DNA from: Penicillus capitatus
Lineage: Eukaryota > Plantae > Chlorophyta
Assembly (NCBI GenBank): GCA_965649825.1
Contig: OZ287701.1
Span: forward strand, 671,101-735,100
Direction: 5' to 3'
DNA length: 64,000 bases
Within the stretch, counting starts at the first letter, position 1. Each line of letters opens with the position of its first letter. This document shows positions 28,890 through 48,762 of this stretch, piece by piece. Under the pieces are notes generated by a model that saw nothing but the letters and a program-made list of their open reading frames with translations, was not told where the DNA came from and made no database searches. The position numbers and the translations under genes were made by a program.

Positions 28890-29107
28890 TCGTTGATTTG
28901 TTCGATCGCTCATCGATCGATGTCGAATTGTACGATCGGCGCACGTTTTGGCGTCGTCGATTTGTTCGATCGCCCGTCGATCGATTTCTAATCGACTTTG
29001 ATTACGATTCGACGACTACCACGACGGCGGGATTTGATCGATCGATCGATCGATTAGGAAGAACGAATCGTCGATTGGAGATGAATGACGACACGTTTGT
29101 CGAAACG
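28890..29107. repeat. CGATCG-rich island interrupted by the LTR element (continues about 30699-30790)
   Basis: Dense TTCGATCG/GATCGATCGATCGAT runs on both sides of the insertion. Confidence 0.7.
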
Positions 29108-29274
29108 TGTCAGAATGACTAGAGCAGTCACATCGTGACTGCCTAGATTTCCGAGGGTTCTGTCTCCGAGAGGGCACTTACTAAGGGTTTACGTCACCTC
29201 AGGATCCTTACAAATACGGGAACGTGGCCCTGTGGATACCTTGCTCTGTAACACAGTGAAGATTTCCCCTGACA
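29108..29274 (+). repeat. 5' LTR
   Basis: Identical by eye to 30527-30693. Confidence 0.95.
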
Positions 29275-29286
29275 TGGTTTCGGAGC
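29275..29286 (+). promoter_or_regulatory. Primer binding site, tRNA-iMet-like
   Basis: TGGTTTCGGAGC immediately after the LTR; 10/12 match to the plant iMet PBS TGGTATCAGAGC. Confidence 0.75.
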
Positions 29287-29429
29287 TGAGTCTACGCTCC
29301 TTTGTTTGAACTCCGTCTGTGTGACGTTACGCGTTTTGCTGCGTGCTTTACGCGTTTTCCTGTGTGGAACTCGAGACCTGTCTAGACGCGTCTAGGCATA
29401 TCTAGGAATTTCAAGAAGCCTCGACAAGG

Positions 29430-30455
29430 ATGAGTCGAGCACAACCAAGAGAGCAGGGTCAAACAGAAGAGAGAAGGAGTAGCTTATACGGAACGTATCA
29501 ACTGGGTGATTATGGCTTCGTGAATGTCATCACTGAAGCGGGCGAAGACGAAAACTGTTTCCCTAAACTGAGGGGACGCCCGGTGTTGACGCAGCCAGAA
29601 GACGTTGTCGACGATGCGTGGTACTGGTTGGTGGATATGAATAAGATGAAGCGTTTTCTCGAGCGGATTGGCGCATGGGTACGGGAGAGACGTGACCTGC
29701 CGCAGAGGCTACAGGAAGAAAGACAAGCGAGTGATGGACTGCGGCGCGAGTTGACCGCAACAGGTGAAAACCTCACCAATGCACAAAGGGCGTTGCGCGT
29801 GGTTCGCGCGGAAAAGGAAGAATTGCTGAAAAGCCTGCAGGAAGAGCGGCGAATTAACGAGAAACTGCGAAGAGACATCACTGAGGATGTCCACCAGACC
29901 AAACACGAAGTGGACAAGGCCCGCATGGAAGCCTTTTCTCTCCAAGAGAAACTCAAAGAGACAGAAGCGGCCTTCACAGAGGCAAAGAACAATTTCATTT
30001 CGGCCCCTGATTTGGTGTCAAGTTTATGGTCGCTGACCAAAGAAGTAAAGACGGTGCAGAAAGAACTGAAGACGAATTTTGAAAAGACAGCTGAGGTGAT
30101 AGCGACGAGACCAGTTGTTGGACGACAAAGTTTGAGGACGCTGCAACAAATGAAACGGGTGCTGCATGACATTGGACGGTATCCGCAAAGACGGCGAACG
30201 AAGACTGACGTGACAGAAGACGGTTTGCGGAAAGTCAAGCGTGGCAGAATCTGTTATTTCTGCCGGTGCAAAGGACATCTGCTTCAAGATTGTCCGCGGA
30301 CGCGTAATGCGGATACGGCCGAATCAGCAGCCCCAGATACGTCGTATACTCAACTACGAACTGAGGGTTCACCGGAAACGACTGAAGAGACAGCATCAAC
30401 GGGTTGGAACGTCTTTTCGATTTTTAAAAGGACATTTACCTCGGGAATCGACTGA
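29430..30455 (+). CDS. Gag-like protein, 341 aa (coiled coil plus CCHC zinc knuckle)
   Basis: Intronless ORF inside the LTRs. CYFCRCKGHLLQDC fits CX2CX4HX4C, and there is a long heptad-rich central region. Confidence 0.85.
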   Translation: MSRAQPREQGQTEERRSSLYGTYQLGDYGFVNVITEAGEDENCFPKLRGRPVLTQPEDVVDDAWYWLVDMNKMKRFLERIGAWVRERRDLPQRLQEERQASDGLRRELTATGENLTNAQRALRVVRAEKEELLKSLQEERRINEKLRRDITEDVHQTKHEVDKARMEAFSLQEKLKETEAAFTEAKNNFISAPDLVSSLWSLTKEVKTVQKELKTNFEKTAEVIATRPVVGRQSLRTLQQMKRVLHDIGRYPQRRRTKTDVTEDGLRKVKRGRICYFCRCKGHLLQDCPRTRNADTAESAAPDTSYTQLRTEGSPETTEETASTGWNVFSIFKRTFTSGID

Positions 30456-30491
30456 ATTTTTAATTGTCCATTGGTGGGGGGGTTTCCTGTC

Positions 30492-30526
30492 TTCGGAGTT
30501 CCGCGCAGCGGAGATGAATGGGCCCA
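30492..30526 (+). other. tRNA-iMet 5'-half-like sequence in place of a polypurine tract
   Basis: TTCGGAGTTCCGCGCAGCGGAGATGAATGGGCCCA(T) versus plant iMet ATCAGAGTGGCGCAGCGGAAGCGTGGTGGGCCCAT (recalled). It abuts the 3' LTR. Confidence 0.65.
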
Positions 30527-30693
30527 TGTCAGAATGACTAGAGCAGTCACATCGTGACTGCCTAGATTTCCGAGGGTTCTGTCTCCGAGAGGGCACTTAC
30601 TAAGGGTTTACGTCACCTCAGGATCCTTACAAATACGGGAACGTGGCCCTGTGGATACCTTGCTCTGTAACACAGTGAAGATTTCCCCTGACA
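30527..30693 (+). repeat. 3' LTR
   Basis: Identical by eye to 29108-29274. Confidence 0.95.
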
Positions 30694-31132
30694 AAACGCT
30701 ATCACCGTCGATCGTCATCAATCTCACAACCGGACACACACAAAAAATCTCGATCGCATCAAAACACATCGATCTATGCGATCAGAGAGCCCCAAAGTAT
30801 CATGCTGCTTGCGGTTTCATGCGTCAAAAAGCCAGCAAAAGATCACTAATCTCGGTTCAATCGGCAATATTTCTGTAAAGATATAACTGCGGCTAATCTA
30901 TTATCCCTTCTGATTTCCTATTCATGTTACTGTTAGTCTGCGCCACTTGCTATCGTTCTTTGCTTTAATTTGCGCCGATGTCTTCCTTCTCCCTGCTGGT
31001 ACCAGTCTTTGAGTCTTCGTATTACATGTCCGGCGAAGGTTGGACGTCTAACACAACACATATTAGATGTTCCTTTTGCTCCTGATTATGGGTATGCTGT
31101 CGATGGATTCGGATGGCAGATCGTAGTTCGTG

Positions 31133-35081: not shown

Positions 35082-36291
35082 ATGACGAAGCAACAGTCGA
35101 GCAGTTCCTCCGGCCTCGAGTTTCGCTTGCATCCCGTTGAGTGCCGCTCCCGATGCGACGAATCGCGTAAATGCCATGTCCGTAGTTGGTGTTGATCAAT
35201 GTGAGTGACCACCACACGCGAATGCGATGTAACTCCCGGGATGCCGCGACGACGGTGATGGGATGTCTCTTGGGTCTCCAAACGGGACGCGTTGTCGATA
35301 TCAGCAATTCTTTCGAAGTGGTGCGCCACGCAGACGACATCGATTGGCAGTTCACCGAAACCCGCCTCGAACAATGTCACTCCCATCTTTTTGTCTTATC
35401 GTCCCATTGTGACACGCATGTCGTAGACAAGACGGTGTTCCCCGATCTCGATATCATTGGATGGTACTGCGTCGGTGAGACGGAGCTCTGCGAGCAACAC
35501 ATGGCGATTCAACGCAAGGCATCCACAGTGTTACGTGTGGTACATCGTAACAGTGCCGTCTAGATGATGGAGATGAATGAGAGTCCCGTATTCTTGATGA
35601 TGCATCCAACGATCGATCCAATGCAGAAAGATCTTCCTGTCTTTCTCTATGAAACGGAAGTGCATTTGATCGACGATATTCCGTCGTTCATCTTTGTCCG
35701 TGCCGCGTACTCCATTGCGGTAAGTGAATGCCCTTTCTCATATTTCCAGACAGCTCGTTGCTAAGAATCGCATACTAGACTGAAGATGCCGAACGTGTGG
35801 GTGTCAATCAAGTGGCGAAGAGTTCCACCGCAGACGGCGACAAAGGCACCGGTCAATGTACCATCGGATCACGCATCAGAAGAGCCGTGTTCATATGAAG
35901 CGGCTGCTGTTTCTAGTCATCTCACATCTTGGGGGACTTTATTCGGCCGTTAAGATGCTCAAGGACCGCCTGGCCATACTCTTCGCTCTCATGGACAAGA
36001 TGGAGTCGGGTGAGTTCCATCAAAGGGTGGGGCGATGTCGGGTGATGTTCGGTTTCAGGAGAGGTGGAAATGGATCACGGGTTGATGCGTGAGATTTCAG
36101 GCTTAGCTCAGAAGGTGCCACTCGTGGACGACGCCTCCTTTCAGGAGAGCTTTACACGCGAGTACGACGATGCATTGTTGACGATTCATCTGGCATCAGT
36201 GACGAAGGGTGTCTACGCTGCGAATACAATTCTCGAGAAGAGCCAGTACTTAATGGAACGCCCACGGAAGAAGCTCCTGTCGATGAGCTGA
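35082..36291 (+). CDS. CSN6: COP9 signalosome subunit 6 (MPN- domain), multi-exon
   Basis: Spliced SSGLEFRLHPLVLINVSDH, VMGCLLGLQTGRVVDISNSFE, VFPDLDIIGWY and ESPVFLMMHP; C-terminal FTREYDDALLTIHLASVTKG. Confidence 0.9.
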
Positions 36292-37779: not shown

Positions 37780-40700
37780 ATGGCGTACCCTCTGCATTTC
37801 TGCCGATGCTTACTGATTCTAATGCTCTGCCGTCCGATTCTTGCCTCTTCGGAAAGAGAGGAGAGCTGTATTCTTGATATCTTCCATGGATCACACCTTG
37901 CAATTCGATGCACTGGACCAGAAGAGATTGAAGAAGTATTTGACTGGGTAAATGTGACGGCACGACGGTCTTCTCCTATCGACATCGCCCCTGGAATACA
38001 ACTCTTTGGCGAAGTAGCTGACACAGGACAACGCACCTTTTTGCACATAGAAGATAGAACGCTGGAAATCAGCACCAACATGATGCCAAGCGATCGTAAG
38101 TCACGTCGTTAACAGAAGGCATGCGTATAAGAATTCTGTCCAGTGCTTGAGGCATGGGATGTCCAGAGTGCGATTGCTGTTGTGAATTCGACGGTATGGC
38201 TGGTGAGTAGCACTATCTACCCGGCCAATTCCACATCCATTTCTGGAGGTGAGTCCACGGACAGACACGAGATGTAGCTAGAGAAACTGATCGTGGTGAT
38301 CTAGGTCTCTTTGTTTCGAAATCGCATCTCATTGTCGAAGACTGTCAATTTTACGGGGAAGCTGCTTTTGAGAACAGGAATGAAGCTGGCGTTATTCGAG
38401 CGACGAATGGCTCGTCGGTGGACATTCGGAATTCGAATTTCAAAAACGTCGGCAGTGATGTGGCAGCGATTTTTATTGATGGGGAATCCCATCTCACTGT
38501 TGACGACTGTTCATTTGACGGGAATTTTTCCTCCAAGAACGTGGGTGAAGCTGGCATTGTTCGAGCAGTGAATGGCTCGTCAGTGGACGTGCGGAATTCG
38601 TATTTTCAGGACGTCAGCAGCGATGTGTCAACGATCGACATCGATGGAGCATCCCATCTCTTTGTCGACGGATGTTCATTTGGTGGGAAGTTTTTCTTCG
38701 CAAATAAAAATGCGGGAATTGTTCGAGCAACGAATAGCTCGTCCGTAGACGTCCGAAATACGAATTTTCAAGACGTCAGCAGCAATGGAGCGGCGATTGA
38801 CGTCCAAGGAGTGTCCCATCTCACTGTCGACGGTTGTTTCTTTCGCGGGGATCCTGCTTCTCTTGAGAATGGAAAGAAAACTGGCACAGTTCAAACAGAA
38901 AATGCCTCTCCAGTGAACAAGCGGAATGCGAAGAATCCAACCACTAAGTATGCGTATGAAGCTGGCATTGTTCGAGCAACAAATACATCTGTGGTCGTGC
39001 GGAATACGAAGTTTCGAGATGTCAGCAGTCACGTGGCAGCGATTCACGTCGTTGGGAAACGGCATCTCGATATCTCTGTCGTTACGTTTGCAAGAATCAC
39101 AGGATATCAAGGTTCCGCCATCTATGCCACAGATGGCAGCAGTGTTCGAATTGCTAACTCCTCGTTCTCTGGCTGCGATTCGTCGATGACGGGCACTGTC
39201 ACGATCGAGAGTAATGCTCTTACTCCATAAGTTCAACGTTTTGCTCATTTGCATCGCAGATGGAAAGGAACTGAATATCAGCGGAAGTACTTTGATGACG
39301 AGCAAAGGTGTGAACGGAGCAGCGGTGCATGTGCGGTCTCCATCAGCAGTTGGAGATCTGAACAACTCGGAAAGCGATGTCATGAAGCTACGCATATCCG
39401 ACAGTGACGTTCAGGCGAACGCTGCGACGGAGGACGGAGGTGCTCTGTACGTCTTTGGGGCGGATCTGGAGATAACGCGTACTCAGATCCTTGGAAACAA
39501 AGCCAGCGATCGTGGAGCTGGGCTTGCTCTTTTCGAAGCCAGAAAAGCGACAATCAGAGATTCTTCGGTCGAAGACCACTTCTTTCAGAGCACCAGCATA
39601 TGGTTTGAGCAAACAGGAGCCGGAATCTATGCCGAACTCGTGGAGAGCTTCATTCTAGATAACTGTACCCTTAGAGGCAACAATGCGATCAAAAAAGGCG
39701 GCGGTGGCTACTTTGTGTCGCTTCTGAAACTGGAGATTCGCAACTGCAATATTACGACAAATCACGCGAGAGAAGAGGCTGGATTGGGAGTCAAAGATGT
39801 GAAGAACGTCACTGTCATGAACACGAATGTCACGTCCAATCAGGCCAGTAACTTCGCAGCAGGCTTGTCCTTTCTGGAGACCATGGATTTAACGCTGCGC
39901 AATTTGGTCTTCAGAATGAACGAAGCTCCCAATGTCGGTGCCATGTCAGCAATGTCGGCGAGCAATGTCTGGATGGAAGAATGCACTTTCAGAAACAACT
40001 ATGCCACAGGCGGCGGCGCGGGTGCTCTGAAGCTCATGGCTGCGCTGAACGTCAATATCACTCGGACGAAGATTCTCTTCAACAACGCAAAGGGCGAAGC
40101 GGCTGGCATCTTAGCTGAAAGTGTGGATGACATGACGATCGATGCATCGGTATTTCGAAGAAACGAAGCGCACAGTGGAGCCTCGTGCTTGATCCGTCTA
40201 GCCAAGGCAGTGTACATCATCCAGTCTCGGTTCCGAAACAATCGTGCGACAGATGGAAGTGGAGGTGCTCTCTTTGTCGAACAGGTCGACAGGGCATTCG
40301 TAACGCAGTCGAATTTCTCCTACAATCAGGCACAGAGCGAAGGCGGGGCCTTTTCGATATCGGGCACTCCTCGTGTGAGCTGCATTCAGACGCGCTTTAT
40401 CCAAAACAACTCCACGATGGGATCTGCCGGGGCCTTCGCGGCCAAGCTGATGGACAATGTCTTCCTCCGAGGGTGTCGTTTCTATCAAAACGGTGCTTTC
40501 CGTGACGGAGGTGCCGTGAGTCTAGCAAGCGTCTACAATGAACTAGAGATCATAGATTCAGACTTTGCTGAAAATGAAGCTACTGGGAGGCAAGAATCGC
40601 AAGGCGGAGCTATTGCTGTCTTTCTCTTTTCGAAAATGAACATCGAACACTCAGCATTCAGGAACAACAAAGCACGTCTGAATGGAGGGGCCATAAGTCT

Positions 40701-43091
40701 TCCTGGGACTAAGAGAGAATTGAGTCGCAATCTAGTCATGACAGAAAACACGTTTGTTAGTAACGAAGCCGATGCTGGATCCGGTGGGGCGTTGTATTTT
40801 GAGGTAAGCTGAAGACCCTTTGCTGTCACATCATCACTGATAGATGTTCTTACAGAAATCGCCGCATCTCGAGCTCAATCGTGGACGTTTCGAGAGCAAC
40901 AGAGCCTCTCTAACGGGAGGTGCCATTCTGGTGCAGACAGGCGAACATGTTATCTTTTCTCAGACGTATCTTGGGGACAACCGACTGAAGAAAAGCGAGG
41001 CGGTCGCTGATGATAGCTTTGACAGAAGTCGTCGAGGAAAAGGCCATCGTCCAGAAACTAGAGGATTTCAGAGTGGCGAGGATGGAATCAACGGCAGTGT
41101 CTGGCAGCATCCAAACCGAATAAAGAATGGTGGCGCCATTGCATTGATAGAGATAGACAACACTTCTCTTCTCGGCGTCCAGCTGAGAGCAAACACCGCT
41201 CCAGGATCTGGAGGCGCAGCTTTCATCCAAGTCCTCGATCTCTCGACCCACCCCCTCTGTCGACTGACGAATGCTGTGCAGGGTTCTAGGAGTGTCGTAA
41301 CGGACGGGACAGAGTTTTCCGATAACGAGGCCTGGACGATGGGTGGAGGTCTCTTTGTCGATAGCGTCCAGGCGATTGCCATAGATGCATCAGAGTTTAA
41401 GTATAATCGCGTGAGTAGGAAAGACGACGAGCCAAACTACAAAGGCAACTTTGAACTCAACGGAGGGGGCTTGGTCATTAAGAGATCGCAGAACGTGCGT
41501 CTGAATAAACTCGTCTGTTCGCAGAACCAAGCCAGAGACTCGGGGGGAGCCATTAGCTTTGACGTAAGATCTCTGTCCTCTGTGTCGTGTCTCATCTTGT
41601 CTCTGTGTTTGGCAGATGGTGTCGTTGTTGGACGCTGAAAACTGCCAGTTTGGTCACAACCGTGCACGCAACGGCGGTGCCGTGCATGTGGTGGACTCCA
41701 ATAGGGGATCCATCCATCGTTGCCATTTTGCAGAGAACATGGCTGGTGGTCTGCTTGGAGATAATTCGAATCTCATGCCACAGAACGGCACTCGAGGAGA
41801 TGCAACGATCCCATTGAAGAATAACGCCGGTCATGGGGGTGCCATATTTTTCGAAGATGCACAACACTTCAACATCACAGCTCCAGAATTCCTATCCAAT
41901 CTGGCTCACGGTCGTGGAGGCGCTTTTCACTGCGCGAAATCGGGTAATCTAGCTCTGTCGAACAGTCGTTTTCTGAACAACAGTGCCCTCCACACCGGCG
42001 GCGCCATTTCGGTGCACAGAGGGAATCTCTCGCTGTCAATCGATCAGTTTACAAAGAACCATGCCGTGAACGGAAGCCTTCTGTCCGTTTCGGGAGGCAT
42101 CGTCAATGGCTCAGGAATACAAACCTATCAGAATATGGCTGATGAACACGGCGGATTGGTGTACTGCACCAACCCGAGCAGCATCCGTTTGGCCACGTCC
42201 AAGTTCGTCGACGATGGAAGCCAGCTGGGTGATTCCTTTATGGCGAACTGCAGCTGTCAGGTCGCCATTGTGGAGTCCAAGATCGTCTGTTCAAACGACG
42301 ATGTTCGTGGCTGCGGATTGGTGGCGGCGCCAGATGCCATGTGTGATTCGGGCGTCACTCTGAAGACGGCAAACGTGATCTACTACAACAAATTCTGGAG
42401 CATTTTCAAACTCATTGTACCGGCACTCGTCTCTGTGCCATTGCTGATTCTGATTGCACGGTTCTGCATGCTGCTGTGGACAGGAACTGCCAAGAAACTG
42501 GGAGTTTGGAAAGAAGATGTGGAGCCGGAACCGTTGCTCATCGATGGATATCCAGACATCTGGGGTCCATTACTTGACGACCACGCTGACAATGACAACC
42601 ATCCTCGCAGCAATCTCCACGTACACAGCACCGACATGTTGGATGAACACGTTCCGTGGGATCCATCCACGAACCGTCGTCCATCCACATTCCATCGACC
42701 GGCAGCCATGCGTGCATCCGTTCGCCCTGTTGACAGTGTTCAGTCCATGACGCTAAGGTCCCATCGACTGCGGATGGAGGACGACCTGCTTTGCAGTCCG
42801 AACACCGTTGGAGCAGATTCGAAGAAAGTCGATTATTGCATTTCGAATTTCGACGATTCTGCGACAGCTGTGGCACCTGATATCAAGTGTTATGGAATCA
42901 CAGGTCAACAGCAACATGCGCTTTGCACTCCATCTCTGAAGGAACATCGCATCACGGTCGATGATGACACGCCATCCTCTGTGGAAGATCTCAGACGTCA
43001 CATCTGTCATACGATTCACGAACAGCAAGATTTCAGATTTGAATACGAACAAATGATAGAAACGAGATTTGAGTCTTCGATTTTCGACTGA
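37780..43091 (+). CDS. Type I membrane protein with a large right-handed beta-helix (pectin-lyase-like, PMP-type GGA(I)/FxxN repeat) ectodomain, multi-exon
   Basis: Signal peptide MAYPLHFCRCLLILMLCRPILA, dozens of FxxNxAxxxGGA motifs across ORFs 38418-43091, and a TM segment FKLIVPALVSVPLLILIARFCMLLW. Confidence 0.85.
38382..39080 (+). repeat. Four tandem in-frame units of about 162-165 bp (about 55 aa) in the ectodomain
   Basis: Units start near 38382, 38547, 38709 and 38958 with GAAGCTGGC.TT.TTCGAGC. Confidence 0.85.
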
Positions 43092-45803: not shown

Positions 45804-48762
45804 ATGACGTGGGTCGATACGTCGCTGTCATCTATGTCGTCGAAACAGAACGGAGTTCGTTGCGTCACCGTCGGCGCTGTCGGCGCCACGCTGACGATCG
45901 AAGACGTCGTGCGCGTTGCCTACGGTGATGGCGTCAACATCGAAACCGCTGCCCTTGAGCGCCTCAAACGTCACATCGAAGAAGACACCCTCCCTCCCCC
46001 TCCCGATGCCGCGGACGCTGAAAATCCACTCGAGACATTAAGAATCGCGCCAGAGCTCATACGAGCGGGTGTGTTCGTTCAGTTGGCCTCTCTCGCAAGA
46101 AGCAAAAGCGGTGTTCGCGTGGAGTGCCTGACCCGTCTACAAGAGAAGCTCCATGCCAAGGAGGACGAGATCATCATGGGACATCCCATGGATCGCAACC
46201 TGCTGGCAAAGCTGCTGCCAGAGGAGACAGAAATACCGAATGCCGAGAAATGGGTACTGACATCGGGGAACGCTTTCTCAGCTGGTATTGGTGCCATGGG
46301 TCTACATCTTGGTCTTGGATTGGCCTCCATAACCAATGGCATCGCTGCTCTTTCCTGTGAAGCCCTGGCGGCTTCGATCAAATCTTTCGATGCGCAACGG
46401 ATCGAAGCCTACGCAAACAAAAACGCTCAGGAAGTCGCTGAATCGATGAGGACATTGCTCAACGGATCCAAACGTGTGCAGTCGAAGAGTGCAGGGATCG
46501 GAAATGTATCAGGCATTCGAGATATCCCAGTGGTCCACGGAGCAGCAGTGGATGCCTTCTCTGCTGTTGAGCTTTCTTTGGTCTCCGAACTTAATGCCGA
46601 TGCACTCGATGCGAAGACGCTGATGGAGTTCCCTCACGAGACGTCGTTCACTTTCTTTACGCGGACGGAAAATGCTGTGCGAAGCGGGATCCATGTGCTC
46701 GAGCTCAGTATCAAACGTGTGGGCTATCTGCTCGATAAGCTTCCTGAACTCCATCCTCTCATGGAGACGTCGGGCATTGCATTGCCTCCCAGAGAAAAGC
46801 TCGAGGAGCTTGCAGCGTTTCTCAAGTCGATGCATGACTCGCTTCTGAAACAGGTGAAGGATCTCAAAGATCAATTGCAGGATGTTTTGCAATGCCAGAG
46901 TGAAGGGGCCCTTCCCACTGCTGGTGTTGCCCTGTTGTCACACGAAGTTCTGAAGAATTTGTCGTCGTCTTTGTCATTGGAATGCGTCCTCGCTTTACTC
47001 TCTCTGCATTTCTTGGAGCCCAAGATTCAGGACACCGACGAGGAGACCTCCGAGCACACATCTAAGAAAGAGAAGAAACGCAAAGGGAAACAGCGTGCGA
47101 CATTTCTGGGCCAAGGAACTGCCCATCTGCGTCGTTTTTTCCTTGAACAACTGCATGCATTGGTCCCTTTTGAAGAACAGTCGCAGACCAGTGTGGTAGA
47201 TAGCCAAGAGCATGTGACACAATGGATGGAGAAGTGCCTTGAGCTGCTGGCTGTGCATGGCTCGAGGCTCTACGAAGTGATCCGAGTGATCCATCAACAG
47301 ATCGATGAACATCAGGTGCAACGCAAGCCCAAGATTCCGAAAGGCGCTCGGGATTTCCTTCCGGATCAGATGCGCATTCGGGAGCAAGTGTTTGACATCA
47401 TCACATCCGTTTTCAAACGACATGGCGCCGTTGCTATCGACACGCCCGTTTTTGAATTGAAGGAGACATTGACAGGGAAGTACGGTGAAGATTCCAAGCT
47501 CATTTACGATCTGGCAGATCAAGGAGGCGAAATCCTCTCTCTCCGTTACGATCTCACTGTGCCCTTCGCCCGCTACGTGGCTCTGAACTCCGTCGGTAAT
47601 ATCAAGCGTTACCACATTGGTAAGGTCTACCGACGGGATCAGCCCCAAATGACCAAAGGACGTTTTCGCGAATTTTTCCAATGTGATTTCGACATCGCTG
47701 GATCGTATGCCTCGATGATTCCCGATGCCGAATGTATCAAAGTACTGGTCGAGGTGTTGAAGAATCTCGATCTGGGCGCGTTTGAAGTGCGGATCAATCA
47801 CCGTAAACTCATCGATGCTATGATGGATATCTGCGGCGTCCCCAGTTCAAAGCATCGCCCAATCTGCTCCGCCATCGACAAATTGGACAAAGAGCCATGG
47901 GAGGTCGTCAGGACTGAGATGGTGGTAGAGAAGGGATTGGATGCGTCCGTTGCCGATCAGCTCGGTGAGTTCGTGCAAGTTCGCGACGCACCGCGAGACC
48001 TTCTCCAAAAACTGACCGATGCTGCACATCCCTTTATGCAACACGACGAAGCTCAGGGCGCCCTGAAAGAGATGGAGACATTACTGAACTATGTGGACAA
48101 TCTGAAAGCGGCGGAACACATTGTATGGGATCTCAGTCTCGCTAGGGGACTGGATTACTATACCGGCGTCATCTACGAAGCAATCTACAAGGAAGGGGCG
48201 ACGGGATCTGTGGCGGCTGGCGGACGTTATGATGAACTGGTTGGGATGTTCAGTGGAAAAGATGTCCCGGCCGTCGGCGTCAGCATAGGCGTCGAACGGG
48301 TCTTTGCTCTCATGGAAAAGAAAATGAAAGAAAAAGCCGAAGCTGACGGCACAACGATTCGTACAAATGAAACTCAAGTGCGATGCCTGCCCCTTGCTTT
48401 GCTTGCCATGCGTCTGAGTGCTGCCTAGGTTTTGGTGGCATCAATTGGAAATGGACTGCAGACACGTCGCATGGAAATGTGCGCTGAGTTGTGGTCTGCA
48501 GGTATCGCTGCCGAATTCGGCTACAAACCGAATCCCAAAATGGGTGACAGTTTTGATTATGCCCTTCAAGAGGGCATCCCTTTTATGGTCTTGTCTACAT
48601 CTCTCACATATGTCGATCGACATCTCACTCTTTTAGGTTCTCTTTGGCGAGGACGAACTGAAGGAAGGTGTGGTCAAGATCAAAGATCTGGCTGCCCGGA
48701 CGGAAGAGGCCGTCAGCAATGCCGATCTCATTCCCGAACTCCTAAAGCGTCTCAACGCATGA
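45804..48762 (+). CDS. HARS: Cytosolic histidyl-tRNA synthetase with N-terminal HAL/PAL-like domain, two 3' introns
   Basis: [62 protein letters not shown] and AGGRYD. The N-terminus resembles ammonia-lyase helices. Confidence 0.95.

Follow-up and report, generated by a model that had tools for sequence, protein, structure and literature searches.

A family of LTR retrotransposons to which an element of the green alga Penicillus capitatus belongs carries, directly against its 3' LTR, a same-sense copy of the 5' part of a tRNA, and the tRNA concerned appears to be the one that primes the family's minus strand, namely an initiator-like tRNA-Met whose acceptor stem has a U1:A72 pair. The element lies in a 64,000-nt stretch of contig OZ287701.1 (positions 671,101 to 735,100), hereafter called the window, and all positions below are counted from the first letter of that stretch.

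The window element is 1.59 kb long, is read on the plus strand throughout, and contains one ORF between two identical LTRs. Both LTRs (29108–29274 and 30527–30693) are 167 nt long, agree at 167/167 positions and run from TGTCAG to CTGACA, and they are flanked on the left and right by the target-site duplication AAACG (29103–29107 and 30694–30698). The 12-nt primer-binding site (PBS), TGGTTTCGGAGC, follows the 5' LTR at 29275–29286 and ends in TGG, as expected for pairing with a CCA end, and the sole ORF (341 aa) occupies 29430–30455. Downstream of the ORF there is a G-run, GGTGGGGGGG (30473–30482), with a G-rich run at the equivalent place in relatives of the element. The tRNA look-alike, which lies 10 nt beyond it at 30492–30527, corresponds in sense to tRNA nt 1–35, counted along the gene, and sits at the position of a polypurine tract. 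On re-reading, all of the coordinates and strings that the first-pass annotation gave for the element were correct. We class the element among the non-autonomous LTR retrotransposons, and it has recently been active.

The 341-aa ORF product has a small N-terminal part, a coiled-coil helix at about residues 70–224 and a CX2CX4HX4C zinc knuckle, with a predicted structure that is mostly one long helix, and it contains no RT, RNase H, protease or integrase domain. Its 26 homologues are all found in ENA assemblies, and a search of viral contigs returned no relatives. The proteins for mobilisation may instead be supplied by Ty3/gypsy elements of the type present at L061 and L062, which encode a zinc knuckle, protease, RT, RNase H and integrase. 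The Pfam matches in the autonomous partner's P0027 (zinc knuckle at 369–385, protease at 415–516, RT at 776–935, RNase H at 1014–1109 and integrase at 1168–1381) follow the protease-RT-RNase H-integrase order of Ty3/gypsy (Metaviridae). A search with the autonomous polyprotein returned only itself, one relative at 88% and one relative at 26%. L061 and L062 have the same 12-nt PBS as the window element and a D-arm-like block before the LTR. The 341-aa ORF is unrelated to the N-terminal part of the autonomous polyprotein, and the small and the autonomous element of this pair have only cis signals in common.

A tRNA gene that fits the PBS, an initiator-like tRNA-Met(CAT) gene, is present in environmental contigs. 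A metagenome scan for it gave 53 loci, and 25 of the 53 extracted 72-nt stretches are identical (TTCGGAGTGGCGCAGCGGAAGCGTGGAGGGCCCATAACCCTCAGGTCCCTGGATCGAAACCAGGCTCCGAAA, labelled tRNA-Met(cat) by ARAGORN), the rest being variants or intron-bearing. None of the gene copies in the environmental contigs encodes CCA, and some contain introns. Once CCA is added, the tRNA's 3' end, GCUCCGAAACCA, is exactly complementary to the 12-nt PBS. Eukaryotic cytoplasmic initiator tRNA-Met is marked by a CAU anticodon, three G:C pairs in the anticodon stem, A54 and A60, and an A1:U72 pair. The environmental gene shows the CAU anticodon, an anticodon stem with three G:C pairs at its base, and both A54 and A60 (in an AUCGAAA T loop), but its acceptor stem is TTCGGAG/CTCCGAA, followed by A73, and the 1:72 pair is accordingly U:A and not A:U. 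The first-pass annotation had named the implied U1:A72 pair as a difficulty for its own proposal, being atypical of eukaryotic initiator tRNA. That difficulty is removed by the existence of just such a gene in many copies in environmental contigs, and an initiator-like tRNA that departs from the A1:U72 rule is thereby brought to light. Searches gave no link between this gene and the elements in one organism: ARAGORN detected a tRNA gene neither in the window nor in L001–L007, and the tRNA-bearing metagenome loci were matched neither by the family proteins (tblastn) nor by the window (blastn, tblastx). A search with histidyl-tRNA synthetase, meant to place the host, did not single one out; its best named matches were green algae at 68–71% identity, with brown algae at about 63%.

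Reading towards the 3' LTR of the window element, the look-alike consists of TTCGGAG (30492–30498), TTCC, GCGCAGCGGA (30503–30512), GATGAA and TGGGCCCA (30519–30526), after which the LTR opens with TGT. TTCGGAG equals tRNA nt 1–7, GCGCAGCGGA equals nt 10–19, and GGGCCCA together with the first T of the LTR equals nt 28–35, while the look-alike has a 2-nt insertion and a diverged middle. In a sense local alignment to the tRNA, the 48 nt at the 3' LTR edge score 29, as against 12.0 ± 2.0 for shuffles of the same edge (0 of 2000 reach 29) and 16 in antisense. When 21,314 overlapping 60-nt stretches were taken from both strands of the whole window, the pre-LTR site ranked top with its score of 29. 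The next distinct tRNA-matching site was the PBS, with 24, and all others scored at most 24; the tRNA-like sites of the window lie at the inner borders of the two LTRs and outside them. The ATGGGCCCAT block is a 10-nt palindrome and because of this leaves the strand unfixed when taken alone, whereas the D-arm block fixes it. A control with other tRNAs was uninformative, since the loci had been selected for the tRNA-Met in question.

These results uphold the earlier proposals that the segment looks, in sense, like the 5' part of a tRNA-Met of initiator type and that the PBS and the pre-LTR segment point to one tRNA, as both match the U1:A72 tRNA-Met gene. The further statement that no purine tract precedes the 3' LTR stands in part. 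It is strictly true, in that the element ends in CCCA and no uninterrupted polypurine tract abuts the LTR, but 10 of the last 15 nt (AGATGAATGGGCCCA) are purines and the G-run described above lies a short way upstream.

The same 12-nt PBS is present in every relative, autonomous elements included, which indicates a single minus-strand primer, the U1:A72 tRNA-Met, for the whole family. The look-alike was likewise found in all relatives examined, which are at 42–50% protein identity, and in the autonomous partner, decayed in different ways, so that its conservation in other copies is borne out. Eight elements gave sense scores of 26–34, reached by 0–1 of 2000 shuffles. All of the small-element alignments begin at tRNA nt 1 and end at the LTR junction or 1–2 nt inside the LTR; the autonomous element keeps tRNA nt 8–25 only, the acceptor part being absent. 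The segment comes in five sequence types across proteins that are only 42–50% identical, and the five differently decayed versions together span tRNA nt 1–35 in lineages whose LTRs can no longer be aligned with one another. Every type is found in copies with 98–100% identical LTRs and with target duplications (4–5 bp in L006 and 5 bp in the other family copies).

The point at which the LTR cuts off the tRNA copy falls in three registers, namely after tRNA nt 34 (window clade and L006), nt 26 (L005, L063, L064 and the small element of L061) or nt 23 (the autonomous elements L061 and L062). The best-conserved parts of the segment are its two ends. All copies long enough to include the GGG of the anticodon stem have a T in front of it, and a U directly 5' of this GGG is accordingly predicted in the host tRNA. 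TTCGGAG is invariant in the small elements, 30–35 nt upstream of the LTR, and the core common to all types, the autonomous element included, is a purine-rich GGAAGCG(TGG) block; 10–11 of the last 15 nt before the LTR are purines in every intact copy. Relative to the tRNA, every copy has indels, and these are common to close relatives (the window element and L002; L003, L004 and L065), which argues that the segment is inherited from the element and is not recopied from the tRNA. L003-type copies also have a mismatch to the tRNA 4 nt from the would-be primer end (position −4). The L002 copy, with LTRs identical at 165/167 positions, has an extra TCCA before the LTR, which we dropped as a clue to priming because this older copy harbors a nested insertion with inverted ends and the 4 nt may postdate integration.

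Compared with an ordinary polypurine tract (e.g., that of Ty3; PMC5371799), the segment is alike in abutting the 3' LTR, in having 10–11 purines among its last 15 nt and, probably, in being the site of plus-strand priming. It differs in being recognisable as a sense copy, 23–36 nt long, of the element's own primer tRNA (the 5' part), and in ending, in the window clade, in CCCA and not in purines. The half-tRNA priming of copia, Ty5 and Osser also makes use of an initiator tRNA's 5' part, as far as the anticodon loop, and when the opposite strand is read, the LTR edge followed by TGGGCCCAT resembles a copia-type PBS. However, the copia/Ty5/Osser site is complementary to the tRNA, adjoins the 5' LTR and primes the minus strand, whereas the window element has a usual PBS that pairs with the CCA end and has its half-tRNA copy in sense beside the 3' LTR. 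Alignment and duplex tests agree with the first-pass annotation that the layout is neither this one nor the complementary 3' PBS of Ty3. Helenus has a tRNA-like part (a polymerase III promoter) inside its LTR, with an ordinary PBS and polypurine tract between the LTRs (PMC10886601). Like Helenus and other TRIMs with small-RNA-derived LTRs (PMC10886601), the window element is a non-autonomous LTR element with tRNA-derived sequence, but its LTRs lack a tRNA-like part and its tRNA copy replaces the polypurine tract. It is not of the Helenus/TRIMp3 type, as Rfam returned no tRNA match in 29000–30800 even at E ≤ 10 and the tRNA-like sites lie outside the LTRs. Self-priming of the Tf1 type does not apply to the family either, its LTRs holding at most CTCCGA of the PBS complement and most of them none of it.

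The explanation that we tentatively place first, giving it as a whole a little less than an even chance, is that the conserved segment is functional and that the plus-strand primer would be a tRNA-derived, purine-rich piece cut from the element's own RNA. Capture of nt 1–35 of the mature tRNA at the pre-LTR position would have taken place in an ancestor of the family, as the five decayed versions suggest. Purine-rich GCGGAAGCGUGGNGGG, which runs from the 3' side of the D arm through the 5' strand of the anticodon stem, would then be the family's equivalent of a polypurine tract, and RNase H would leave there a primer of the element's own RNA ending directly before the UG that opens the LTR. 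Later lineages may have cut the copy short by deletions between TG microhomologies, yielding the junctions after nt 34, 26 or 23, and the invariant TTCGGAG of the small elements would have an additional role beyond that of a polypurine tract. A primer cut in cis is favored because each of the three junction registers precedes a TG, which is awkward for a single tRNA cleavage product, and a primer from the element's own RNA also fits the 10–11 purines in the last 15 nt and the purine-rich core of all types. Once the minus strand has been made, the element RNA is already hybridised at the site of plus-strand priming.

Several observations count against a primer cut from the element's own RNA. 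CCCA adjoins the LTR in the window clade and L006, and characterised polypurine tracts are not known to end in CCCA. TTCGGAG at 30–35 nt and the exact 10-nt D-arm block at 15–24 nt upstream of the LTR are left unexplained, and the single ancestral capture is itself reconstructed from five decayed versions.

It is conceivable, though rather doubtful, that the primer is instead supplied in trans, i.e., that a 5' fragment of the minus-strand primer tRNA would anneal to the minus-strand DNA and prime the plus strand, with RNase H or a host nuclease trimming at the LTR edge. Both strands would then have one tRNA as their primer, and the sense copy would exist so that the minus-strand DNA complements the tRNA fragment. 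Priming of this kind would suit the start of the sense copy exactly at mature-tRNA nt 1 in all small elements, the match that reaches the LTR and extends 1–2 nt inside it, the invariance of TTCGGAG far upstream of any ordinary polypurine tract, and the junction CCCA, which is unlike a polypurine tract; the two conserved ends of the segment would serve as an anchor and a priming end. Moreover, copia and Ty5 accept initiator-tRNA 5' fragments as minus-strand primers (PMC5371799). Nevertheless, the registers at nt 34, 26 and 23 would demand three fragment ends, the autonomous element has nt 8–25 only and no acceptor part, and indels break the complementarity in every type, with the mismatch at −4 added in the L003 type. 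The fragment would also have to displace element RNA that is already paired at the site. G26 and G9 are usually methylated in eukaryotic tRNAs, and the methylated bases would hinder pairing. The literature that we searched gives no description of such priming. As the first-pass annotation had worded it, the plus-strand primer would be a tRNA half cleaved at the anticodon. The three junction registers argue against one cleavage site, and an anticodon-cut tRNA half is therefore unlikely as the rule for the family.

We consider it improbable that the segment acts by mimicry at the RNA level, in which case the sense copy would mimic three parts of the primer tRNA (acceptor strand, D arm and anticodon arm), either recruiting a factor that binds tRNA (the element's RT or its nucleocapsid, an initiation factor, or Met-tRNA synthetase) or undergoing strand exchange with the primer complex, and priming of the plus strand would be a separate or incidental property. 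In HIV-1, a tRNA-like element near the PBS imitates the anticodon arm of tRNA-Lys3 by its shape and binds the synthetase. Both it and the window segment are sense imitations of part of the primer tRNA in a retroelement genome, but that of HIV-1 lies beside the 5' PBS and is based on shape, whereas the window segment lies at the 3' LTR and has no stable fold. Mimicry would agree with the sense orientation and with conserved blocks that are not purine-rich (TTCGGAG, TGGCG and GGGCCCAT). It would also agree with CTTCCGCTG(C), found near the 3' end of the LTR in several lineages, which is antisense to tRNA nt 12/13–21 and hence to the D-arm copy, a match reached by 2–9 of 500 shuffles. However, no stable local RNA fold was predicted for the segment (z-scores from −0.6 to +1.0), and closure of a cloverleaf by a CTCCGAA partner in the LTR was rejected, as the LTR contains no such partner. 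With the 5' leader, the segment pairs no better than shuffles do, the stems are too decayed in the copies to imitate the shape of a tRNA, and mimicry would leave the strict abutment on the LTR edge unexplained.

It is very improbable that the segment is a second, 3' PBS of the Ty3/gypsy type, which would link the two ends of the genomic RNA by pairing with the primer tRNA. Bipartite 5'–3' sites exist in Ty3 and Drosophila gypsy (PMC5371799, PMC1635307), and in these elements, as in the window element, both termini of the genomic RNA contain primer-tRNA-related sequence. In addition, TTTCGGAG and ATGGGCCC would each be able to pair with 8 nt of the tRNA (nt 66–73 and nt 28–35, respectively), a pairing that is possible because both strands read alike in the stems and in the GGGCCC palindrome. 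In contrast to the 3' parts of Ty3 and gypsy, which are complementary to T, D or anticodon arms, the window segment is in sense. Antisense scores of 12–19 across the eight elements amount to noise beside the sense scores of 26–34, and the predicted energy of an antiparallel duplex between segment and tRNA is no better than that of shuffles (z from −1.8 to +2.4). The GGGCCC palindrome is absent from the lineages with a junction after nt 26 or 23, and TTTCGGAG and the PBS would be rivals for one set of tRNA bases. It is hardly credible that the resemblance is due to chance or that the segment is a functionless, neutral relic, even though the two strongest blocks of the window element are GC-rich and partly self-complementary (TCCGC/GCGGA, GGGCCC) and so invite over-reading, given that 0 of 2000 shuffles reach the score, that the site is the top match of the window, and that five decayed versions jointly cover nt 1–35 in lineages with unalignable LTRs, all in recently active copies.

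Our literature searches for a sense tRNA half at the site of a polypurine tract found no description of one. In textbook reverse transcription, the first strand is primed by a host tRNA and the second by a purine tract that belongs to the RNA of the element itself. In the present family, which is still active, the site for the second strand copies the primer of the first and has long been kept across the family. The window element differs from the tRNA in having TTCC-G in place of UGG after the acceptor strand and GATGAA in place of AGCGUGG, and these known differences make a primer from the element's own RNA and a tRNA-fragment primer distinguishable. Should the primer come from the element's own RNA, it would follow that a captured primer tRNA can give rise to a polypurine tract and that the specificity of RNase H can tolerate non-purine ends such as CCCA. 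Should a tRNA fragment prime, both the priming mechanism and the use made of tRNA 5' fragments would be new, and the family would be the first case of an LTR retroelement with a host RNA, and not a piece of its own genome, as the second-strand primer.

The element at 29108-30693 is an LTR retrotransposon of 1586 nt that is not autonomous and was inserted very recently, since its two direct repeats (29108-29274 and 30527-30693, 167 nt each) are identical at 167/167 positions, the 5-nt target duplication AAACG lies on both flanks, and a domain search of its single ORF (29430-30455) revealed neither a reverse transcriptase nor a protease or integrase domain. The LTRs start with TGTCAG, finish with CTGACA and enclose 1252 nt, and the primer-binding site (PBS), TGGTTTCGGAGC, stands directly after the left LTR (29275-29286). 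The coordinates and strings reported in the first-pass annotation were all correct when checked against the window sequence. The ORF product is modeled as one long coiled-coil helix with a CX2CX4HX4C zinc knuckle. It is not capsid-like; apart from the knuckle and a small N-terminal part, it is made up of a single helix of about 150 residues. The model has a mean pLDDT of 65.5, with values above 90 in the helix region. The C-terminus, ...FTSGID, is conserved.

The primer tRNA gene was sought by scanning metagenome contigs for TCGGAGTGGCGCAGNGGAAGCG, which gave 53 loci; an identical 72-nt gene, TTCGGAGTGGCGCAGCGGAAGCGTGGAGGGCCCATAACCCTCAGGTCCCTGGATCGAAACCAGGCTCCGAAA, is present in 25 of the 53 extracted stretches, and the remaining variants include single-base differences or an intron after the anticodon loop. 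ARAGORN assigns the gene to tRNA-Met(cat). It has a CAT anticodon. Its anticodon stem has three G:C pairs at the base and its T loop reads AUCGAAA, both typical eukaryotic initiator features; CCA is not encoded, and T-runs lie downstream. Once CCA is added, the tRNA ends in GCUCCGAAACCA at its 3' side, to which the 12-nt PBS is exactly complementary. The gene also has a U1:A72 pair, with A73. Such a pair is atypical for an initiator tRNA, in which A1:U72 is usual, and this had been the main worry of the first-pass annotation, as both the PBS and the 7-mer preceding the 3' LTR imply it; the metagenome contigs nevertheless carry a real tRNA-Met(cat) gene with U1:A72. No tRNA gene was found in the window or in the related loci L001-L007, and the tRNA-bearing contigs have nothing else in common with the window, so it is the element that suggests that a U1:A72 tRNA-Met is present in the host. 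Among the metagenome loci (L008-L060; e.g., L008 7540-7611), this initiator-like tRNA is multi-copy, and some copies carry introns. The L010 copy has an internal deletion, and L014 contains tandem repeats made of the anticodon-arm part (CCCATAACCCTCAGG...). At L017 5545-5584, an isolated, almost perfect copy of the tRNA 5' part (nt 1-40, variant sequence) is followed by TGTGGAAC..., with neither a tRNA 3' half nor an LTR repeat in the 8-kb contig, and it recurs in the same way in L018 and L051 (three samples).

When 48 nt spanning the edge of the 3' LTR were compared with this tRNA, tRNA nt 1-35 aligned in sense with a score of 29 (antisense 16; shuffles 12.0 +/- 2.0, with 0/2000 reaching 29). 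This segment (30492-30527) is the best tRNA match among the 21,314 stretches of the whole window, both strands included; the next distinct match is the PBS, with a score of 24, and the rest score at most 24. Of all sites in 128 kb of sequence, the two most tRNA-related are thus exactly the inner LTR borders. The ATGGGCCCAT block of the segment is palindromic and hence strand-neutral, and it is the exact D-arm 10-mer GCGCAGCGGA that fixes the strand as sense. The earlier statement that no purine tract precedes the 3' LTR holds for the last four bases, CCCA, yet purines make up 10 of the last 15. A G-run lies upstream of the segment at 30473-30482. An 11-mer of the segment, GGAGATGAATG, occurs at 30510, at 29077 (31 nt ahead of the 5' LTR) and at 35569, 5 kb off, where no element features were found around it; a match of this length was reached by 3/2000 shuffles in the flank comparison, and the 11-mer is probably a common purine-rich word.

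The window ORF has 26 homologues, in clusters 42-50% identical to the window protein, and the surroundings of 12 of them were compared at the DNA level together with the autonomous element described below. Both the identical 12-nt PBS and a sense tRNA look-alike against the 3' LTR are kept in all family loci examined, the autonomous element included. The family segments have sense scores of 26-34, reached by 0-1 of 2000 shuffles. Type A (window, L002) reads TTCGGAG TTCC GCGCAGCGGA GATGAA TGGGCCCA, type A2 (L003, L004, L065) TTCGGAG TCT GCGCAAACGGAAGGTGGA TGGGACCA, and type B (L006) TTCGGAG TATA CGCAAGCGAAAGGGG TGGGCCCA, with the LTR beginning after tRNA nt 34 in all three; type C (L005, L063, L064 and the small element of L061) reads TTCGGAG T(T) TGGCG GGAAGCGTGG, with the LTR after nt 26, and type D (the autonomous elements of L061 and L062) T TGGCGCAG GGAAGCG, with the LTR after nt 23. 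Each type lacks different parts, the types jointly span tRNA nt 1-35, and each element's segment differs from the tRNA at known positions. The LTRs of differing types cannot be aligned except for short motifs. All types are present in copies with target duplications (4-5 bp in L006, 5 bp in the others) and LTRs 98-100% identical, which indicates that every version of the segment works. We are highly confident that a sense segment derived from the very tRNA that the PBS matches occupies the plus-strand site throughout the family.

Within the family, L002, a 97% relative of the window element, carries in its leader a 1.0-kb insertion (~1436-2465) with 52-bp perfect terminal inverted repeats, a MITE-like DNA transposon, and has four additional nucleotides (TCCA) between GGGCCCA and the 3' LTR. 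L064 (101-5770) holds three small elements head to tail at 1450-nt spacing with identical 341-aa ORFs, followed by a fourth from a different lineage, forming a tandem array with shared LTRs.

The autonomous element (L061 3423-8193) has identical 151-nt LTRs, a GATGC target duplication and a single 1503-aa ORF encoding a zinc knuckle, protease, reverse transcriptase, RNase H and integrase, arranged as in Ty3/gypsy elements; a second sample yielded an 88% identical element (L062 2354-7118). No relationship was found between the N-terminal part of its polyprotein and the small-element protein. Small and autonomous elements have two things in common, the PBS and, at the 3' LTR, the D-arm-like block; this is the pattern expected of parasite and helper, and this helper may mobilize the window element. 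The autonomous element is only 4.8 kb long; its start codon straddles the border of LTR and PBS, the 5' LTR supplying its last A and the PBS the TG, and its ORF extends into the 3' LTR, so that the tRNA-like block lies inside coding sequence.

Near the LTR 3' end, several lineages carry CTTCCGCTG(C), which is complementary in sense to the D arm (tRNA nt 12/13-21, antisense match; L003 2400-2408, L006 2818-2827, L005 6329-6337), with a match length reached by 2-9 of 500 shuffles; it is decayed in L065 and in the window copy (29263-29271, TTTCCCCTG). By analogy with Ty1 and Ty3, it could be a candidate extra tRNA contact. Downstream of the PBS, at a distance of about 25 nt, the window (29311-29315) and its relatives share a conserved (GAA)CTCCGTCT, which can pair with CGGAG of the PBS in a predicted hairpin that would hide the PBS, or could equally pair with CGGAG before the 3' LTR, each over only 5-6 bp, with no covariation possible. 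Elsewhere in the window, one ORF (45804-48428) is a fusion of an aromatic-amino-acid-lyase-like part with a histidyl-tRNA synthetase, as also seen in several metagenome proteins; among named organisms, green algae match the synthetase best, at 68-71%, implying a poorly sampled host lineage. Four consecutive ORFs (38418-43091) have beta-helix and Chlamydia-PMP-type repeats, and such a gene also adjoins the autonomous element in L062.

Given how reverse transcription proceeds, the site adjoining the 3' LTR should be where the plus strand starts. We tentatively favor, at somewhat under an even chance, a plus-strand primer that is a piece of the element RNA itself: RNase H would leave a primer at the 3' LTR edge, and the segment would merely descend from a captured tRNA, its purine-richness being a coincidence of the 3' side of the D arm and the 5' strand of the anticodon stem. 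The element RNA is already paired at this site once the minus strand is complete, the autonomous element retains just tRNA nt 8-25, and the common denominator of all types is a purine-rich GGAAGCG core. The LTR starts after nt 34, 26 or 23 by lineage, always before TG, which looks like deletion between TG microhomologies from an ancestor that would have had nt 1-35; indels are inherited within lineages, which argues against any recopying of the segment from the tRNA. The proposal of the first-pass annotation, that a tRNA 5' fragment anneals to minus-strand DNA and primes the plus strand, is the more doubtful of the two. Consistent with it, the segment begins at nt 1 of the mature tRNA, TTCGGAG is invariant 30-35 nt upstream, the exact D-arm block lies outside polypurine-tract range, and the CCCA end is not polypurine-tract-like; initiator-tRNA 5' fragments serve as primers in copia and Ty5, which is a precedent.

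Mimicry of the tRNA at the RNA level is improbable: no stable fold of the segment was predicted, and the LTR offers no partner that would close a cloverleaf. There is about as small a chance that none of the readings considered here is correct. A Ty3/gypsy-type 3' binding site and a chance or neutral relic are jointly less probable still, and each is very unlikely, the relic slightly more so. The 3' sites of Ty3 and gypsy are complementary to the tRNA (PMC5371799, PMC1635307), whereas the segment here is sense and its antisense scores lie in the noise; duplexes of the segment with the tRNA, or with the 5' leader of the element, have predicted energies not better than those of shuffles. A half-tRNA PBS of the copia/Ty5 type would lie on the opposite strand and at the other LTR. 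The strand, the LTR and the antisense scores agree with the first-pass view that the layout belongs to neither system. Nor is it of the Helenus kind, in which the LTR is tRNA-derived (PMC10886601).

No published description of a sense tRNA-derived plus-strand site was found in the full-text literature, a search in which most subscription journals lie outside coverage, so that absence is unproven. What is new here, within the known kind of LTR retrotransposons, is the tRNA-derived plus-strand site, and if a tRNA 5' fragment does prime the plus strand, this family would represent a new priming mechanism.
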